Origin: Convolutriloba macropyga
Lineage: Eukaryota
Direction: 5' to 3'
NCBI RefSeq assembly: GCF_964194025.1
Contig: NC_134473.1
Location: 53,568,001 to 53,632,000, forward strand
Length of the DNA: 64,000 bases
The notes beneath the pieces were generated by a model, which made no database searches, was not told the origin of the DNA, and saw nothing but the letters and a program-made list of their open reading frames with translations. The position numbers were made by a program, and so were the translations under genes. Below, in pieces: positions 1,558-36,060 of this stretch; within the stretch, counting starts at the first letter, position 1, and each line of letters opens with the position of its first letter.

Positions 1558-3955
1558 ATAAAGTGAGCTTAGATGAAGGGAAAATGAGACAAAAACTAAA
1601 TTTGCTTAACAAAAAAAGAAATAAACCAGAACACTCAGCACTAAAACAAACAAATCATTTTAAGAAATAATTTTAAAATCAGAACCGTTCAGAACTGGAA
1701 ACAAATTGATTGAAAAACAAAAATTACAAAAAATACTAACAGTCACGCAACTAAATTGTCGCGACTAAACAAAAAACAGAAGTATTAGCTATACTTGAAA
1801 ATACTGAAGCCGGCATAGCTTGCCTAAACGAGACCAACTAAGGTAGGAAACCGCCCCCGCAAATTTAGAAGACTATACCCTAGAAGGAAACAACAAACAC
1901 AGCCGATAATGACCTGCAATCTACATCAAACACCGATTAAATTATGAGCTAATACGCCAAATTACGCATCAATGAGACAACAAAGATGTTTGGCTTTCGC
2001 AAATCATCAATAAGACTTCACGATAACCGTTGACTATGAAAACGACAACACCCAATAAAGGCAAATATCAAAAAATTAAGTAGAAAAATGTGAGAAGAAA
2101 GTGTCGAAGCCATTTAAACCATGTTTTTCTGTGAAACTTTACGTACGATCCATTGAAGTTCTTCTCTAAGCCAAAGCAACCATCAATTTTAAGATAATGG
2201 GCTAGAATTTCAAAAAGATTCAAAATTACAAAAAAAATCCAAACATTTTTTTTAAAAAAATATGAAAACTCGTGCATCGAAGCCGTAACAGTCGTTTAAT
2301 TTTGGTTCAAATAGAACGGAGGGGGATCCGATAATTACTGAGACTGACATACAGTTCAAGAAAATATTCTTAAAATAGCTTTCAACGGAAGTCATTAAAT
2401 ACGGTAAGTTATGACTTGATTGGAGAAGAACACTATTTTTAAAACATTGGTTATCAATATGACATCACAATAAGTCTTATGACTATGGAAACAACAACAA
2501 ACACAGGCAAAAATCAAAAAATCAACAGGAAAGTGCGAGAAGAAAGTGTCGAAGCCATTTAAACCATAAGCTTTTCTCTGAAAATTTTATCCATGATCCC
2601 TTGAAAATGTTTCCTGAGACAATGGGAGGTATCAAAATCAGGATAATGTGATAAGATTTCAAGAGGAACCAATATTACGAACATATCCAAAAAAAATTTT
2701 GAAAAATTTTGAAGTCTTGTTGCATTGAACTCATATTACAAATAGTTAGAAGACAAAAACTTTAGCCAGAATAATTTTGGTTGCATTAGAAAAGAAGGGG
2801 GTCCTGTCATTACTGAGACTTACTTACAGTTCACGAAAGCAAGTGTATGATCAGTTAATGTTAAAAAAATAGCGAAAAACCAGTTTTAAAGTCTTAACAG
2901 CCATTAGCTGTCCAGTCAAAGCTCTAGATAGGTTCAATTAGTGCTCATTGTCAACAAATCTATGCCATAGGACTCCAAAAATTTAGTACAAAGTCAAAAA
3001 CAAAATCAAAATTTTACTTAAATTTACGAAAACTAAGAGTCTAAGCCAAAAAACAAGATTGATTCCTTGAAGACGAATTTTTTGTTCTTTGGGCTTCATT
3101 AGAATGTAATTCGTGTTGTCAATATTGGAACTGCTATTTGAAAACTGACTAGACTCTAGGTGACTGCATTTTTTTGATAGTACACTTTCCTATGAGACCA
3201 GAACCCTTCTTTTTATCCCCTTCGTTAGTCTATTAGGAATTCAAAATTGACTCATTTTGTGGTGTAAATTGGAATTTGGAATTAATATTTCTATTAAAAA
3301 AACTTGATTTGAAAAATTGTACTAAAAGTGAACAAAATCATGCCAAATATCCCGTTGTTCAGACAAAACTTCAATCCTCAATAACTCCTCCAAAAAAACG
3401 AAATTCAAAAAAATCTCTTTAGTTTCCAATTCTACGCTGGACGTGCTTTTTAATGATACAATTCACATTTCTCTACGATGAATATGTCGATCGGCCAAAA
3501 TTGACTGAACAAAAAAACCCATTTGAGTATATAGTTCCTCCCCCCACAAGTGGGGTCGGAACAATAAAGTGAGCTTAGATGAAGGGAAAATGAGACAAAA
3601 ACTAAATTTGCTTAACAAAAAAAGAATTAAACCAGAACACTCAGCACTAAAACAGACAAATCATTTTAAGAAATAATTTTAAAATCAGAACCGTTCAGAA
3701 CTAGAAACAAATTGATTGAAAAACAAAATTACAAAAAATACTAACAGTCACGCATCTAAATTGTCGCGACTAAACAAAAAACAGAAGTATTAGCTATACT
3801 GGAAAATACTGAAGCCGGCATAGCTTGCCTAAACGAGACCAACTAAGGTAGGAAACCGCCGCCCTAAATTTAGAAGACTATACCCTAGAAGGAAACAACA
3901 AACACAGCCGATAATGATCTGCAATCTACATCAAACACCGATTAAATTATGAGCT
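1..3955. repeat. Tandem segmental duplication, ~2.0-kb unit (1-1950 repeated at 2011-3955)
   Basis: Position 2011 restarts 'taagacttcacgataaccgttgac' as at position 1. The copies are near-identical with scattered SNPs and homopolymer indels until 'attatgagct' (1950/3955), where they diverge. Confidence 0.95.
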
Positions 3956-7269: not shown

Positions 7270-10200
7270 ATCGCAATTAGCAGTTCACTGCTAATTGAGT
7301 ACATTAAAAATTATATCAAAAAAGAGCTCTTTTCCAGTCCGACACTTTGCTTGATCTAGTCTTATGGATATTGAAAGTCAATAATTATCAATATAGGATT
7401 CCAGGAGCTTCACAATATTTGAGCAAGATATATTGTTAAAAAACTTAACGGTCGGGTGCCTTGAATAAACAACTTTTTTCGGTAGATAAAATAAGGCGGT
7501 ATCTTTTTCGTTAACAATGTGACCAACAAACAAATTAATATGTTTTCCATGATTATGTTCTCCATGTTTAAATAATGGTGGTCATTTGCTGCGCTGAATG
7601 GCAGATTTTAAATTATTATTATTCTCAGTGCAGCCCTTGCACTTGCACTCAGTGGCTTTAGCTAGTGTATCGCGATGGATATGAGGCCACCAACAACTTT
7701 TCTCTGGGCTGAGCATAGCAAAACTGCCGGGATGAGAAGAATGTATATCTTCCACAACAGTTTTTTTAACTGCCTTATATCTTGCAATCCAGTCGTCGAT
7801 GCATTGACATCCAGTCTTTACACTGAGATCTTCACACAGTGAACGAATGTAATATACAGTATACTTAAGGAGCCTATTTTTCAATTTTTCATCAACACTC
7901 ACCGTTCAGTCTTGTTCTTCGTTTAGGATGCAAACTTTATCAGTCAGTATTGCCCAGAGGGATTTGCTGAATAATTTTTTCACCGCTTCTGAGAAAATGG
8001 TCCTCTGATTCATTTAGCGAATTGTTTATTGTTAAGGGTGTCCTTTGTGACGTAGACCTCTTTTGATTCGTTCGGGGCGTAGAAACGTTTACAAGAGAGT
8101 TTTCTCATTCCAGGTTGTGGTTGAGCGTGACTCTAGATTTTGATGGCGTTGATGTTAAGTTCGACTTTGGGCGAGGCATTGAAATTCTATTTTTTGAACT
8201 ATCGGTTTTTTGAAGCAAAGTTGTAGTGGAGGAAGACAACCAATCAGTTTGACAAATTTTTGCAAAAAGCGAGGAATTTTTGGATGAGCTGTTATTATAG
8301 GCAGAATTTGTGGTATGTATTGTTTTCGCTCTAATTTCGTAATTGATTTTGCATTTATTTGGTTTGATGTTTAATGTAGCGCCTACATTGCCTAATTGTT
8401 TACATTGTTCGCATTCTTGTGTTTGTAACTTTTGCAGCGCAAAATAATTGTTATCAGGTGAATGAGTGATCTTAATGTGTGTCAGTTGCAAAACTAGATT
8501 TATTAATTCCGTTTGACCGCTGTGACATGATTGCCCAAATTGTTTTCCTACTATTGTTGCTGATTGAATTCGAGTTCATTAAAACCATGTCTTTTTTCAG
8601 TAGTGTCTCAAAATCCAGAGTCAAATGAAAATAGTTCGGGAGCCAAAAACAATTGGTCCTACGGTCTTCAGTGTTTTGTTTTAATGCGGCTCACAATCCA
8701 GATCAGAACGCACCACATTTTAGTCGAACCTCATGATTTGAGTTGTAAATGCATTTTTTTGTGTTTGACTTGATTGTCGCTTCTATTTCACGAAAATTTT
8801 CTTTATAATTTTGCTCACTTGAAACTCACTTGAAACAAAATGGGATTTATAGATGAGCAAGATTGGGTATAAATTTACTGATATAGTGAAAGGATGTCAA
8901 ATTAGCGAAAAATTTTAAGATTTTTAGGCAGCGGTATAGCCAAAATTGCAGCCGTTCAAGTCCCGATTTTGCAGTGTTATTTTTGCAGATTGATGGGTAA
9001 ACTATTTGAGACATCGGTTTACGTAGTTCATATGTTATAAGTGTGAAGAAACAAAAAAAAAATGAAGACCGATTACTTTATAGTCTATAGTCTCTTGAAA
9101 TTCAGCAGTCTTTTCTGTTTGAAAGTAGAATCCCCTGGTTCTCCATGAATGAGGTTAACTCTGCTATGTTTAGATGTGTCAGAGTGTAATTGAAGCTCGC
9201 TATAGACATAATACAGATCTATTTTCGTAAAATAGCTTTTTGACCGTTCGAGTTTCAGTCAAGTTTTGTTATATCAAATCAGTAAGCATTTCGATATTTG
9301 TCATTTGGTACTTATTTTAAAGTTGTGCTTTGCTGAGTACTCTGGATTCAAATTCTACTTTCAATGAGTAATCTTTTTAAAAAGTTTTGACTGTCGGAGC
9401 AATGACATTTTCATCTGAGCAAAATTAGTTTTTCAATTCGGCATTCTTTCCGCTAACTATTAGTTTCTTCTGTGACTTTAGTTTGGTAGGTTGTAGATAA
9501 GCCCTTCTCCTAATCCTGGAAACTGAGTAGTGATTACTGGTTACATGCGGCATTGGGATTGAAAGCTGATGTTGTTAATTGTTTTACCAGTGTCAAGTTG
9601 CTTTTGCACTACTGCAAGGTCAAGCCGTCAACATCATCTTTCGTCAACATCATCAGCAGTCCCCACAACATCTTTTGGCCGTCTTCTACAGCTGTAAGCT
9701 AAAAGGTCTGTGATTTCGATTTGTTAGATGCAAGTAAAGTCCGTAGTTTCAAAATTACACTATTGGTTCATTAGAGAAATATTTCAGTTCTTTTTCGTCG
9801 GTTGCTGGATTCGATGAGGATGTTTGTGCTTCTTTCAGAATTCTTGTATTTTTAGCTTGTGCCCCGGTACGTTATGCACACCCGCGAGAGAGAACGTGTC
9901 ATTACATAATAAATCATTACGTAAGAAATTCGAACGTGCGTGTGCTTGTTGAGGTGCGAATAAAACGCCCTCACTAAGCAGCGGGGTACAAACAGAAAAG
10001 ATCCGAGTATTCTTGTTACGTTACTGCAGACACTTCACCCATCTATCATTGCCCTACTTTTATGTTTCCATTCTAAACCTGGACATCTTGAGTTTTCCCT
10101 TTAGCTGCTGGTTTACTCATTATTGTTGCGATGTAGTCATCATCCGAGCTTTCGAATAAATAATTAAAATTCTGTCAGTACAATTCGCTGTAACTAGTGA

Positions 10201-29520: not shown

Positions 29521-30845
29521 ACCGACAAAACGCCGGAAGAATTGCTCTCGAACGACTAGTGGGAGCTCTAATCAATTGCAGCCTGCTTCAGTCGTGGGGG
29601 GGGCTAAATGGGACTAAGAAAATCAATAGTGACTACTTTCTCCATTTGACTACTTTCTTTTGAAATCTTTCACTTGACTTCTTTTGAAATCTTTCAGGCT
29701 GTTGTAGCTCACCTCGGTTCGGATTTGTGCATGCAGAGCCATATAAGAGTACTGGCAAAATTAGTGACTTGTAGAGTCCGAGCTCGATCTCTTGTCTTAC
29801 TTGAAGAGCTATGTTTCGTCGAAGTAGGTAGAGTACTTTGTTCGCTTTTTTCAGTCGTTCTTCGATATGTGTCTTCCACGTCAGGTCATGGGAAACATAG
29901 ATGCCGTAATCTTTGATGACTTTGGATGACTCTAGTTTAGTGCCCATAAGCTCGTAATTTTGTGTTTGACCTCTTATGCTCAGCTTTGCACATTTGTCCA
30001 TGGCTAATTTCATTTTATTTTCGTTTACCCACTGTTCAATACCATTGAGATTGTTTTGAACTTGCCAAAACGTTTTCTTCACTGCAAGAATTTTTAGGTC
30101 ATCCGCGAAGATAAATGGGTCAGAGAAAACTAACACATCAGGTAGGTCATATTGCACGATCTATTATCAAGTGAACTAGGCGTACTGTACTTAGACAAAG
30201 CGTTCAACAAAGTATCACACAACCAACCGCTCAAAAATCTGGAAGAATTGGGTCTAGGAGGCAACTCACAGAATTTGCTTTCGTCTTATCTCCTGGGACC
30301 GAAAATAGTTAGTCTCTATCTCTGAACAGAACTCTGACGTCATTACTGTCACAACCGCTGCTCCACAAGGATCCATTCTACGCCAAATGATGTTTTTGTT
30401 AACGACCTTCCAGACGATTGAAGAAATCCAACAAGGTTGGCTTTTGCATCTAACTTTAAGATCATGGCATGCTCGAAACGTGAAACTCTGCGAATGCTAT
30501 TCAACTCTGGTGTGAATAAATGCTTCTGAATGTTGGGAAATGCAATCTGCAAATTCTAAGGGCAATGCGCAGACCAACCCAGAAAGACCTTGGCTTGATT
30601 ATTGCAAGCAGCTTGACCTGGAAAACTGTCCCCCCTCCCCGAAATCTACATCAGCGCTTTTCCAGATAAAGAACATAACCGACTAAACGTCGGAAGAATT
30701 GCTCTCAAACGACTAGTGGGAGCTCTAATGAATTTCAGCCTGCTTCAGTCGTGGGGGGGGGGGCTAAATGGGACTAAGAAAATCAATAGTGGGCTTCAAA
30801 TAACCGCATTAGAGGTTAACATATACCACTATTAAGATTTAAAGT
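28801..30845. repeat. Local duplication (28801-29520 repeated at 30150-30845) flanking a ~520-bp copy (29631-30151) of the neighbouring LINE segment 31910-32391
   Basis: Near-identical sequence blocks; ORFs 29001-29204 vs 30349-30552 and 29633-30157 vs 31498-32256 give matching translations. Confidence 0.92.
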
Positions 30846-31497
30846 AAAAAAAATGGAACCAGTTTCGGCGCAATTTTCATGACTTTTAGTATTAAATTGC
30901 CGCCAATTGAATTCAGCTGCTTGAAATTGTGATTGAGAGAGAATTTTAGATCACGCGAAACGCAAAAAGTCAAGGGCGTAAAAGTCACTCGAAAAATTAA
31001 AATTGTCAAGCGAAAATTTTGCATAAGAAGAAGACACACGTTTACAATAATTGCTATGAACTTCGTTCAAGAGCAATTTAAAATGGCACCAGTTTCGGCG
31101 CACTTTTCATTTGACTTTTAGTATTAAATTGCCGCCAATTGAGTTCAGCGTCTTGAAATTGTGATTCAAAGAGAGAATTTTAGATCACGCGGAAAAGAAC
31201 TTAATACCTTCCAGGCGATAACTGTTATCCCTTCTTTGAGGGCGAAAAGTCGAAAGGATCAGACGAAAAATCAGTCAAGCAAAAAATCGCATAAAAAGAC
31301 CGCAATAAAAATATGGCACATGCATCTGAGGGGTACACTTGGCTGGGCAGCACAAAAGATCCCATAATCGTTTAAAAACGAAAAATTAAATTGCAATACA
31401 AGGGTTAGCTTAAGCGCCTGGTGTTGCAAATTGTTGTTGTTGTTGTTGTTGGGGATTTACAGTTTTCACTGAGGGGATTTTCGTCCCAGTCGTCGTC

Positions 31498-34312
31498 TTA
31501 GAAAATTGTCCTATTATTTCTGCAGTTCTGACAGTCACAGCATAGATGCCAGCTACAGATGTTATTTTCGTCGAATCGCTCGTTTACAAACTTCCACATG
31601 AAATTTAAAACTCGATTTTTAAGACCTTTTTTCGTATTAAATTCAATGTAATTTTCTATTCGATTTGCTAGCCTGCATGTACGGAAAAAGAAATCATTTC
31701 TAGCCTTTTCAGTTCTGGTTTTCGGGAGCTTGAATAATTCATTTGTTCTCCCTTTTTCTGAATTTTGTTTCAGCATTGGTAAAAAGCTATCGTCTTCTGT
31801 CAATTTCGATAAAAGTAGAATGTCATTTAGTTGCATGAACATTGGTAGTGGTAGTATGTTAAGAAGTCTCAGTTGATTTGGATACGGCATGACTTTTTGT
31901 CCAAGGATCCATTTGACTACTTTCTTTTGAAATCTTTCAAGCTGTTGTAGCTCACCTCGGTTCGGATTTGTGCATGCAGAGCCATATAAGAGTACTGGCA
32001 AAATTAGTGACTTGTAGAGTCCGAGCTCGATCTCTTGTCTTACTTGAAGAGCTATGTTTCGTCGAAGTAGGTAGAGTACTTTGTTCGCTTTTTTCAGTCG
32101 TTCTTCGATATGTGTCTTCCACGTCAGGTCATGGGAAACATAGATGCCGTGATCTTTGATGACTTTGGATGACTCTAATTTAGTGCCCATAAGCTCGTAA
32201 TTTTGTGTTTGACCTCTTATGCTCAGCTTTGCACATTTGTCCAAGGCTAATTTCATTTTATTTTCGTTTACCCACTGTTCAATACCATTGGTTGTTTTGA
32301 ACTTGCCAAAACGTTTTCTTCACTGCAAGAATTTTTAGGTCATCCGCGAAGATAAATGGGTCAGAGAAAACTAACACATCAGGTAGGTCATTGATGAATA
32401 TGCAAAACAGGAGTGGTCCGAGAAGAGAACCTTGGGGTACCCCACTTGTTACATCTAAAGTTTCCGATCTTGTGTTGTCTACCCGAACGAATTGTTTCCT
32501 ATTGTCTAATTAGTCAACGATAATTTCTAATAGGCAACCTCCCACTCCAATATTTGCAACTTTTTGTACAAGCTCAAAATGCGGCACTTTGTCGAAAGCT
32601 TTGGAGAAATCTGTGTAGAATGCTACAATTTCGTTGCTTGATTCGTTATCGAGTGCGTCGTGAATTGATTTCAAGAAGGATAGCGTATTTGTATTAACTG
32701 AGCGTTTTTTAACAAATTCATGTTGGTGTTCTGTTAGGAATTTTTCGAAGTGAGCGTATAAAGCTGAACAAATGCATTTCTCAAAAACTTTACTGTCAAT
32801 GTCTAAAAGAGAGCCTGTCGGTAACTTTCTACTTTCCGTCTGTCATCTTTTTTGTAGATTGGTGTCACAGCTGCAATTTTCCAGGAGTTTGGGATTTTTC
32901 TCAGTCGTTTTATCTGCTTGAAAAGTACATTTAAATTCTTACTTGTTTCGCGTGCTGTACGTTGGAAAAAATGCAGGCGGTATGCCATTTGGGCCTCGCG
33001 ACATTGTGGCATCTAGCGAAAGAAGTATTTCGTAGATTGCTTTCTTTGAGATTTCGAAGTTTGTAATTTCAGGATTTCTCAATTTTACATCTTGTATACT
33101 GAAAGGAATTTTGGGTGAGAACACTGAGTGAAAGAACTCGTTCATCATGTTGACTTGCTCTTGCATTTTTGTGCTCTGTTGATTTTCTTTGATTAGTAAT
33201 TTTGGAAGGCTGGGTGATTTTTTCAGGCTTTTCAAGTGTTTGAAGATTGTACCGGTATTTCCTGCACGCATGATTTTCTCCTGATATTCAATCCTGTCCA
33301 GTTCCGATGATTCTATCAATTGGTTTTCAAGTTTATGAACTTCTTGTTTTCGATAACTTGTGGGTTTTTCGGATAAGAGTCGGTTTTGGGTTTGTAGTCT
33401 CTTCATGTTGTAAGAAGTGAAACTTGATATCCAGGGAGGTATACTTTGTCGGTGTCTAGTTCTTTTGGGGACGTGGACCTCGAATATTTGATCCATGTAC
33501 TGGTAAAATTCTTCGCATATGTTGTTTATGTTAGTGAAGCAAACTGGTTTGAAGGGTTCAGTACTTAAAATATTATTTATGCTTTCGTAGTCAGCGTTTC
33601 CGAAACTTCTAAAATTTCCAAGAGTTTCTTTGGCGTATTGGCGTGGACATTCTAGTGTTAACTGGATTGATTTATGATTGAGGAAAATTTCTCGTCGAGA
33701 TGTGCCACCAAATTACAATTTTTGTAAAATGCTACATCTAGAGTGTTCTGCCCACAGGTGGGGAAGTTTATCATTTGTCTGTATAGGGATTCCTCAAACA
33801 ATTCAATGACTTCGTTTTCTTCTTCATTTGTACTTGCTAGAGTTTTCCAGTTAACATCAGGACAGTTTATATCCCCACATAAAATGGTCATTCTTGATTT
33901 AGGAATGATTTTAAGGAGTTTTTTGGAAATCGTTAACCTCGTAACGGTACGGGCTAGTTCTTGGGGGGTTGTAAAAGGCACAAATAAAAATTTCGTTCTC
34001 AGCTAATTGTATTTTGCAGACAAGACTAGAATCCGGTTGCTCAGAAATGACTCTTTCGGAGATGAAGGAGTTCTTTACTGCTATGAGGGCGCCTCCGTGG
34101 GTATTTTTGTCTTGATCCATTTGTCTATCTTGTCGGTAGATGCAATAGTCATTTAGAAATAGTTCAGATGATGGAATGTTATCATTGAGCCAAGTTTCAC
34201 AGAGACATATAACGTTGTAGTCTGAGTTTATTACAGCATTTGCAAACTTAATTCTCCTCTCTACGTTCACAAGGCTCCTTACGTTTAGTTGCAGAATGTT
34301 AACAAGACCTAG
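31498..34312 (-). pseudogene. LINE ORF2: APE endonuclease + reverse transcriptase (several frameshifts/stops)
   Basis: ILQLNVRSL, ICLCETWL, YRQDR..HGGALIAVK, FYNPP, CGDINCP, TLDVAF; [35 protein letters not shown]; C-terminal WHLCCDCQNCR. Confidence 0.95.
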
Positions 34313-35211
34313 TCAGTTTGACTTGGTTTCTACGGAGGCAATCTCCACTTTCGCACCATCGTTGAATAGTTCAAATTTCGAATTTTGAGTTTATCTCGAG
34401 GAACTCCTTCTGTCAACAGTTCTCTTCTCTTTTTCAGAATCAGGTTTTCTTTGAGGGCATCTTCTTTGCTGAGAGCTGGTAGCAAGTAAAAATTTCTCTT
34501 TGCTAATTCCTCTCGATGGTCAATACTTTTGACTAAGGCTAGCCTGGCTTCATGTTCGTTAGCGACCGTTACTAAAAGAGTTCTTGGTTTCTTCCGTTCT
34601 CTCTTGAATTCACCTAGTCGTTTGAGTTCCTTCACTTCAGGCCTAACGCCTATTTCACTCAGTATTTCATTTACTTCGTCAGTTGTGGGGACAAGATTTT
34701 CAGCTTTTGTTTTGTTATGATCTTCAGGGATCCCTTGTATTCTGAAGCTTTGTTTGATGTTGTCGACGCCTTTCTCTTTCTTAATTAACTTTCCAAGTTT
34801 CCTATCGGTCTCCTGTGTGGATTCCACGGAGACCACGGCAGCATACGTTTTATCAACTATTTCACAAGTTATTTTGATGGCGGTTTCTATCTTTTTGTCT
34901 ACAAGCTGAGTCAATCTCTTTTCCATGTTTTTGAGTTGATTGCTAAAGTCCAAATTTTCTATCTTCTCGGTCATGTTCGCCATTGTTCTGCATCTTATGA
35001 ATTTATCTCGCTCGTTTTTGTCCACGCATTCATTGCAGAGAAGCATAATGTTGTTTCAAACATCTATTATCCCGTTGAGGGAGGCCGAGGAAAGTCCTGT
35101 GCAAATTGTCGTCATGTGTATATGACAGTTGCAGGCAACGCATGTATATGTTTTCTCTTGTGCCTGTATTGGCTTGTTACAGGTCTTACAATTTTTTCCC
35201 ATTTGTTTCAT
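34313..35211 (-). pseudogene. LINE ORF1 with N-terminal PHD finger, coiled coil and RRM-like region
   Basis: ATG at 35211 gives CKTC..CVAC.CHIH...C...CNEC (C4HC3 spacing), with one in-frame TGA at ~35057. It continues through FRIQGIPE, KRLGEFK and KPRTLLVT. An apparent 1-nt deletion lies near 34372. Confidence 0.88.
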
Positions 35212-35472: not shown

Positions 35473-36060
35473 TCAAATTTTGGCTGCGTTTCGTTTCTTT
35501 TGCTTTTTCTTTCGTTGCTGTTGAGACGGGCTGTGTTTCTTTTTGATAATTGCTTTTAGATTGTCGCCGTGATTTCGTACAATAGTCAGGGTTTTGATTT
35601 CGAGATGTGGTGCAAGATGTAGTTGGCTGTAGCTGCGAACAAGTTCTTTGTCCTTTTGCTTTCGCCTCGAGAGAAGGTCCTTTACGATGTGTAGAACAGG
35701 TATTCCCGTTCCCTTCAGCTCTTTGTAAACGTCTGGTGCTCCTTCTCTTACGCAGTAAACTATTCCAACTACTTTATGCTTGATATTCTTGATTTCGTTC
35801 ACAAGTTGTTCTGGGGTAAGTGGCTTTCTGGGGTCTTTGCGGGGGCTTGTCACAGAGTTATTGATTAGATCGTGCCAAATAATCAACTGCTCGTTTTTCG
35901 GTATCAATCGAAGTCGTTTTTGAATAATTGACTTATCTTGAGCTCCTCGGTGAAGATTGTATCCTGGCTTCGTGATCACTTGTCTGGATAATCGCTTCTT
36001 GATGTTTGTCCACCTCTCCAAAGAATGGTGAAGAGAACTTGCTCCAATAACAATTACCAT
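35473..36060 (-). CDS. ORF0 of the LINE: SGNH/GDSL esterase-like protein with a basic C-terminal tail
   Basis: Intact 195-aa ORF. VIVIGASSL (block I Ser), KPG (block II), LIIWHDLINN (block III-like) and SQLHL (block V His) occur in SGNH order. Confidence 0.65.
   Translation of the reverse strand: MVIVIGASSLHHSLERWTNIKKRLSRQVITKPGYNLHRGAQDKSIIQKRLRLIPKNEQLIIWHDLINNSVTSPRKDPRKPLTPEQLVNEIKNIKHKVVGIVYCVREGAPDVYKELKGTGIPVLHIVKDLLSRRKQKDKELVRSYSQLHLAPHLEIKTLTIVRNHGDNLKAIIKKKHSPSQQQRKKKQKKRNAAKI

Follow-up and report, generated by a model that had tools for sequence, protein, structure and literature searches.

An in-frame ORF1-UGA-CUA-ORF2 junction in a family of LINEs from Convolutriloba macropyga: a candidate site of programmed stop codon readthrough

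A UGA stop codon followed by CUA constitutes the type II readthrough context, which is found in Sindbis virus (UGA CUA), O'nyong-nyong virus (ONNV; UGA CUA GAC), and Plautia stali intestine virus (PSIV; UGA CUA UGU) (PMC13517186). In vertebrates, bases one to six of the seven-base readthrough motif UGA-CUAG are conserved universally; UGA-CUA by itself yields 1.5% readthrough and the OPRL1 context 31%, about 12 nt are sufficient, and CUAUUA also works (PMC4132726). Here, we analyze a 64,000-nucleotide stretch of the Convolutriloba macropyga genome (assembly GCF_964194025.1, contig NC_134473.1, positions 53,568,001 to 53,632,000; hereafter the window, with positions counted from its first nucleotide) that carries on its minus strand a copy of a long interspersed nuclear element (LINE) with the open reading frames (ORFs) ORF0, ORF1, and ORF2. 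In the family represented by this copy, a single UGA-CUA separates ORF1 from an ORF2 in the same frame, and the reading that best fits the sequences is probably programmed readthrough of this codon, giving an ORF1-ORF2 fusion. The first-pass annotation of the window had called UGA-CUAG an established leaky context, in agreement with both papers cited above.

According to the review dedicated to it, the question of how a bicistronic RNA gives rise to LINE ORF2p is still open (PMC3894237). The routes described so far are the UAAUG coupling of SART1, AUG-independent reinitiation in human L1, internal ribosome entry sites, and 2A peptides, the last in single-ORF LINEs (PMC5972666, PMC3894237, PMC3708506). 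They serve the same task, obtaining little ORF2p from an RNA that yields much ORF1p, but none of them joins ORF1 and ORF2 in frame over a leaky stop codon. The review of non-LTR (long terminal repeat) element protein biogenesis, published in 2013, makes no mention of readthrough or fusion (PMC3894237). No report of UGA readthrough in a LINE was found in a full-text literature search. Noma et al. are said to have described, in 2000, some Arabidopsis ATLN LINEs with orf1 and orf2 in one frame and an amber codon between them, for which suppression was reportedly suggested; these would be plant elements of the L1 clade, with UAG rather than UGA-CUA.

The features of the window copy that bear on the junction are as follows.

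~36060 to 31498, minus strand: one LINE element, comprising ORF0, ORF1, and ORF2
34330..35202, minus strand: ORF1 of this copy, with a Cys/His finger, a coiled-coil-like stretch, an RRM-like part, and an LKIRN tail
34372..34373, minus strand: site without one base relative to other copies, as a result of which the tail of ORF1 and the TGA are in different frames
34313..34315, minus strand: TGA, the stop codon of ORF1 in intact family copies, in frame with ORF2
34309..34312, minus strand: CTAG immediately 3' of the stop, i.e., CTA (Leu, codon 1 behind the stop) plus G
31498..34312, minus strand: ORF2 of this copy (AP endonuclease and reverse transcriptase), ending with TAA 31500-31498

Across the junction, the minus strand reads ...ACC AAG TCA AAC TGA CTA GGT CTT GTT AAC ATT CTG CAA CTA AAC GTA AGG AGC, with TGA at 34315-34313, CTAG at 34312-34309, and ORF2 directly after the stop, just as the first-pass annotation had it. 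The frame behind the TGA begins LGLVNILQLNVRSL and is open for 133 codons. Its endonuclease motif lies five codons past the TGA and there is no ATG until codon 65, which bears out the earlier observation that no ATG precedes the first motif of the AP endonuclease (APE). Ahead of the TGA, the frame of this copy is open for only 25 codons (TQNSKFELFNDGAKVEIASVETKSN), and ORF1, read from ATG 35046, runs in a different frame and terminates at TAG 34332-34330. A single lost base near 34372 had been proposed as the cause, and such a base is indeed present in other copies. L001, whose ORF1 is 97% identical, and the high-depth contigs of the same organism have one extra minus-strand A between 34373 and 34372, and L001 reads TGA CTA GGT at the end of ORF1. 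With this base, ORF1 runs ...LKIRNLELFNDGAKVEIASVETKSN to TGA 34315-34313. A word search with ORF1 retrieved 42 relatives, the nearest of which (P0001, P0002, and P0020, 90-97% identical) end ...LELFNDGAKVEIAS[V/L]ETKSN, i.e., with the restored reading. Logan contigs from two runs of the same organism (X1 and X2) were aligned to window positions 34050-34650. Repeat contigs with a depth of ~1100 (1119) in X1 and 98 in X2 carry the base that is absent from the window copy, retain TGACTAG unaltered, and differ from the window at 34306, with TTT in place of CTT. It follows that the prevalent form of this family in the genome has an ORF1 that ends at the TGA, in frame with ORF2.

The junction was compared among natural copies, for which DNA encoding relatives of ORF1 and ORF2 was taken from assemblies of ENA, Logan, and JGI (L001 to L011 and L091). 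This set comprises twelve junctions from ten subfamilies, with ORF1 45-97% identical to that of the window, and comes from at least eight samples. TGA CTA is present in all twelve junctions, and ORF2 continues in the frame of this stop with a spacer of zero. A sense codon at the site of the TGA would have called a leaky stop into question, but none of the junctions and none of the high-depth contigs has one. CTA is followed by G in nine junctions and by T in the other three. Of the CTAG whose conservation across subfamilies the first-pass annotation had proposed to test, the CTA part is conserved throughout and the G only partly. ORF1 reaches the TGA in 10 of the 12 cases; the exceptions are the window copy and L008, a decayed copy, both of which have a frameshifted ORF1 tail that ends at a TAG, with TGACTAGG still in the ORF2 frame. 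In copies with an intact tail, then, the family ORF1 ends at the TGA, in frame with ORF2, and not at the position that corresponds to 34330. Directly behind the TGA, ORF2 is open for 944-947 codons in L004, L007, L010, L011, and L091, and the APE motif begins 4-6 codons past the stop across the family. The length of the ORF1 tail differs among subfamilies by whole codons only, and the frame stays fixed.

Nucleotide constraint was computed on nine non-redundant subfamilies. Behind the motif, their nucleotide identity averages 57% across 150 nt; in front of it, the average across 30 nt is 32%, about random. TGACTA is the sole invariant run of more than two columns. Invariance at third-codon positions is limited to 2 of 50, one of them being the A of CTA. 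The Leu codon after the stop is CTA in all twelve junctions, whereas the invariant Leu residues at +14 and +42 use four and five synonymous codons, respectively. Two other sites of the same elements served as controls. The stop codons at the end of ORF2 are mixed (TAA in 5 cases, TAG in 3, and TGA in 1), and the ORF0-ORF1 junction shows a gap of 20-170 nt, an ORF1 ATG, and relative frames of 0, 1, or 2. These patterns bear on the view that the in-frame TGA-CTA is an ancestral accident and that ORF2 is expressed by some unrelated route. It is true that family copies share ancestry and that the TGACTAG heptamer is not rare: the window contains 8 copies versus 5.3 expected, a number that by itself is unremarkable. 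However, among these only the copy at 34315-34309 sits at a LINE junction, and the significance of the junction lies in its position and its conservation across copies, not in the frequency of the heptamer. With synonymous and neighboring sites near saturation and the hexamer still invariant, inheritance of a chance arrangement is a highly improbable explanation.

A conserved start codon for ORF2 would also have pointed to a different mechanism, but no ATG is conserved among the junctions. The position of the first Met behind the stop varies from codon 4 to codon 250, depending on the subfamily, and this Met is mostly located beyond the LN.RSL and ETW endonuclease motifs, which contain the catalytic Asn and Glu. 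RNAalifold analysis of the 140 nt downstream of the stop in ten junctions revealed no conserved structure (-1.56 kcal/mol, with no covarying pair), and six single folds gave z-scores from 0.02 to 2.6, none of them being more stable than the shuffled sequences. The retroviral type III mechanism (UAG-G plus a pseudoknot ~8 nt downstream) was considered and rejected, since the family has UGA-C and no conserved downstream structure. Neither the ORF1 tails nor the ORF2 heads of the family contain the D(V/I)ExNPGP motif of 2A peptides. As a separate observation, the 120 nt behind the stop in the window (34196-34315, minus strand) fold worse than 199 of 200 shuffled sequences (z = +2.6), a property that selection for an unstructured stretch, or just the coding composition, may explain.

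In the mechanism that we favor, functional relatives of the window copy have ORF1 and ORF2 in one continuous frame with a single UGA between them, followed by CUA and G or U. Most ribosomes would terminate at the UGA and release ORF1p as an abundant RNA-binding protein. A minor fraction would decode the UGA by a near-cognate tRNA, producing an ORF1p-ORF2p fusion of ~1250 residues with the endonuclease and reverse transcriptase. The ratio of the two products would be set by the stop context alone, as is the case for Gag and Gag-Pol in gammaretroviruses and for nsP123 and nsP1234 in alphaviruses. Judging from the stop context and the comparative data, readthrough would occur at this codon with some efficiency, and the fusion would be the active form of the enzyme.

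Several points weigh against this interpretation. The 5' context of the stop is not conserved, the base after CTA is T instead of G in three of the twelve junctions, and copies within one family are not fully independent samples. With no conserved 3' structure, the efficiency of readthrough may be low. The window copy itself is dead, frameshifted, and incapable of expression, so that the claim applies to the family and not to this locus. None of the listed sequencing runs with this stretch is recorded as RNA. An ATG is present within the first ten codons of ORF2 in four subfamilies (at +4 in L004, +9 in L003 and L007, and +10 in L010). Finally, human L1 translates its ORF2 by a termination-reinitiation that is independent of an AUG (cited in PMC5972666), so that a separate ORF2p does not strictly require a start codon. 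The last two points are also what would be expected under termination-reinitiation, whereby ribosomes stop at the UGA and a fraction of them restart without an AUG at or near the CUA, so that ORF2p would arise as a protein of its own, the route suggested for human L1. In both L1 and SART1, translation of ORF2 is tied to termination of ORF1 (PMC5972666, PMC3894237), and the zero spacer of the family places the stop beside the start of ORF2. However, the known coupling sites have the stop overlapping an AUG (UAAUG), whereas an AUG that overlaps or abuts the stop is found in none of the junctions, and no downstream structure like that of SART1 is conserved. Reinitiation also leaves unexplained the choice of UGA over UAA and UAG, the choice of CUA over other Leu codons, and the fixed frame. 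On balance, we regard it as the main rival, though an unlikely one.

Another group of explanations has the stop removed or redefined in some other way: A-to-I editing could turn UGA into UGG, selenocysteine could be inserted, the stop could be spliced out, or the host could use a genetic code with UGA as a sense codon. UGA does encode Sec, editing can convert it to a Trp codon, and the protein sequence of one relative, P0006, shows a W at the position of the stop. This W was considered as a natural sense variant and rejected: the DNA of the locus has TGA, the locus does not translate to this protein, and the W stems from a gene caller using another genetic code. A search of four intact elements at E values up to 1 detected neither a selenocysteine insertion sequence (SECIS) nor any other Rfam element; the lone match was to the histone stem-loop and fell below the threshold. 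No duplex that could serve an editing enzyme is conserved. An A preceded by a 5' G, as in this UGA, is a poor neighbor context for ADAR. Likewise, there is no conserved GT past the stop region that would suggest splicing. The intact ORF1 and ORF2 contain no other in-frame TGA, which indicates that UGA is not a general sense codon. All this makes redefinition of the stop by any of these means very hard to credit.

The proposed readthrough site can be compared with several known ones. The ONNV nonamer is identical to that of L005 and L011, and the PSIV nonamer is identical to that of L002. In the alphaviruses (nsP3/nsP4) and in the dicistrovirus PSIV, as proposed here, UGA-CUA separates an abundant upstream product from a polymerase that is made as a rare fusion. 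However, these are RNA viruses, several of which have an extended downstream stem-loop, and their fusion proteins are cut by a viral protease, whereas the genomic LINE has neither a conserved structure nor a protease. The vertebrate readthrough genes OPRL1, OPRK1, AQP4, and MAPK10 (PMC4132726) display the same conservation pattern, with an invariant UGA-CUA, a seventh base that is mostly G, and no need for RNA structure; the six bases after the stop are CUAGGC in OPRL1 and CTAGGT in the window. In those genes, readthrough lengthens a host protein at its C-terminus by 13-30 residues, compared with an enzyme of ~945 residues in the mobile element. The Gag-Pol system of Moloney murine leukemia virus follows the same logic that we propose for the LINE, in which a structural or RNA-binding protein is produced in large surplus over a reverse transcriptase that arises through occasional in-frame fusion, but it relies on UAG-G plus a pseudoknot (type III) and belongs to an LTR retroelement with a protease.

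For other LINE lineages, JGI metagenome contigs were scanned with the endonuclease alignment. The scan yielded 80 LINE loci from many lineages, and 28 of these, in which an ORF of 150 codons or more terminates close to where the endonuclease begins, were used for a census. In-frame junctions with a single stop codon were found at 7 loci from 6 lineages, and in all seven the stop is TGA followed by C. The hexamers after the TGA at these loci are CTAGAA, CTAGAC, CAATCA, CTCAGA, CTCAAT, CTGCAG, and CATTCA. The CAATCA hexamer comes from L013 (TGA CAATCA at 3489-3497), a distant in-frame LINE, and fits the CARYYA readthrough motif; this is the type I hexamer of plant viruses, although there it follows UAG rather than UGA. 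In L013, L015, L034, L039, and L072, ORF2 has no Met for 85-326 codons, and the ORF1 of L015 is homologous to that of the family (E = 1e-7). At the 20 loci with ORF1 in another frame, by contrast, the stop codons are TAA (8 loci), TAG (6 loci), and TGA (6 loci), with only two instances of TGA-C. Counted by lineage, TGA-C is present in 6/6 in-frame versus 2/19 other-frame cases (p ~2e-4 in a Fisher test computed by hand). A maximum-likelihood phylogeny of 28 ORF2 proteins has in-frame junctions in at least four places among out-of-frame lineages. The trait needs at least 4 changes on this tree, and the starred branches force at least three; this scatter indicates that it arose or was retained more than once, with UGA-C in every instance. 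Neither of the two scans, of prokaryotic genomes and of viral contigs, detected any relatives.

These counts reflect on two of the explanations considered above. Recurrence of TGA-C in lineages that are not nearest relatives on the ORF2 tree argues against a single ancestral accident. Reinitiation, in turn, does not account for an in-frame class that always has TGA-C while the other-frame class, which needs coupling or frameshifting, uses all three stop codons. Taken more broadly, they raise the prospect that readthrough of a leaky stop is a general, overlooked third route to LINE ORF2, with in-frame UGA-C junctions that lack a start codon (UGA-CUA, UGA-CUN, and UGA-CAAUCA) emerging or persisting repeatedly in unrelated APE-type lineages and an ORF1p-ORF2p fusion as the active enzyme. 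We see this generalization as evenly poised between right and wrong; if it is right, it would offer a built-in explanation of cis-preference and of the low ORF2p:ORF1p ratio.

Three observations from the same searches concern other LINEs. Among the other-frame loci (the L018-L079 set), 18 of 20 share the same offset, with ORF2 at -1 relative to ORF1 and often a 10-65 nt overlap, which hints at -1 frameshifting or overlap coupling as a common alternative. L090 (4001-7321), with an ORF2 28% identical, has a single ORF of 1106 residues, in which a 2A-like GDIELNPGP motif is followed by a PHD finger, an APE domain, and a reverse transcriptase (RT) domain; relatives from the same kind of sample thus use a different recoding device. 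P0063, an APE-RT protein of a LINE, is filed at NCBI under the bacterial metagenome-assembled genome of “Candidatus Thiodiazotropha taylori” and most likely derives from contaminating host animal DNA.

In the family described here, both ORFs occupy one frame and are split by the best-characterized leaky context, which makes the question of ORF2 expression testable with a short reporter. If the proposed mechanism is true, LINEs can work with a Gag-Pol-like ORF1p-ORF2p fusion, which would bear on cis-preference, on particle stoichiometry, and on the interconversion of single-ORF and two-ORF LINEs. There is also a practical side to it: annotation that requires an ATG for ORF2 will misannotate such elements, and gene callers set to another genetic code will erroneously merge ORF1 with ORF2, P0006 being a case in point.

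The N-terminal AP endonuclease and the reverse transcriptase of ORF2 identify the element as an APE-type LINE, i.e., a non-LTR retrotransposon. In Pfam searches with the window ORF2, the piece behind the TGA matches Exo_endo_phos, and Exo_endo_phos_2 and RVT_1 are found further along; the RT sequence matches the solved L1 ORF2p and R2 proteins. The tail of ORF1 has the conserved pattern ...LKIRN-LELFNDG..., and there is a weak match to the C1_2 zinc finger at 35220-35059. Searches of Pfam and of PDB sequences with the family ORF1 and the window ORF0 returned no matches. The finger, the RRM-like part, and the upstream ORF0 suggest, without proving it, a place in the CR1/Jockey group. Decay of the window copy is evident from a premature stop at 35058-35056 in ORF1, in addition to the frame change at 34372, and from at least five frame changes plus in-frame stops in ORF2.

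The remaining reading frame of the element is the following.

35473..36060, minus strand: ORF0 (195 aa; ATG start and TGA end), part of the element, with no in-frame join to ORF1

Homologs of ORF0 are found in L002 (4256-4873), L004 (4224-4829), L007, L009, L010, L011 (273-986), and L091 (2397-2999), in frame 0, 1, or 2 relative to ORF1. They form a family of ~200-aa proteins with a basic tail, and the ORF1 downstream has its own ATG. L008 has a weak Lipase_GDSL_2 match on its record. GT follows the ORF0 stop in 4 of 7 copies, and in the window the sequence TGA GTAAGT resembles a splice donor.

A 39-nt junction probe found no further copies of the junction in the window at up to 3 mismatches. 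However, a partial second copy of the ORF2 3' part of the same LINE is present at 29633-30157 (minus strand), reaching …ERFQKK. A unit a few hundred bases long flanks it and occurs about three times on this strand between ~29000 and 30800. Just past the ORF2 stop, the 3' untranslated part of the element contains a short (AAC)n run (window ~31415-31445, minus strand), which is shared by L002 (~8740-8760), a member of a subfamily whose ORF1 is 58% identical.

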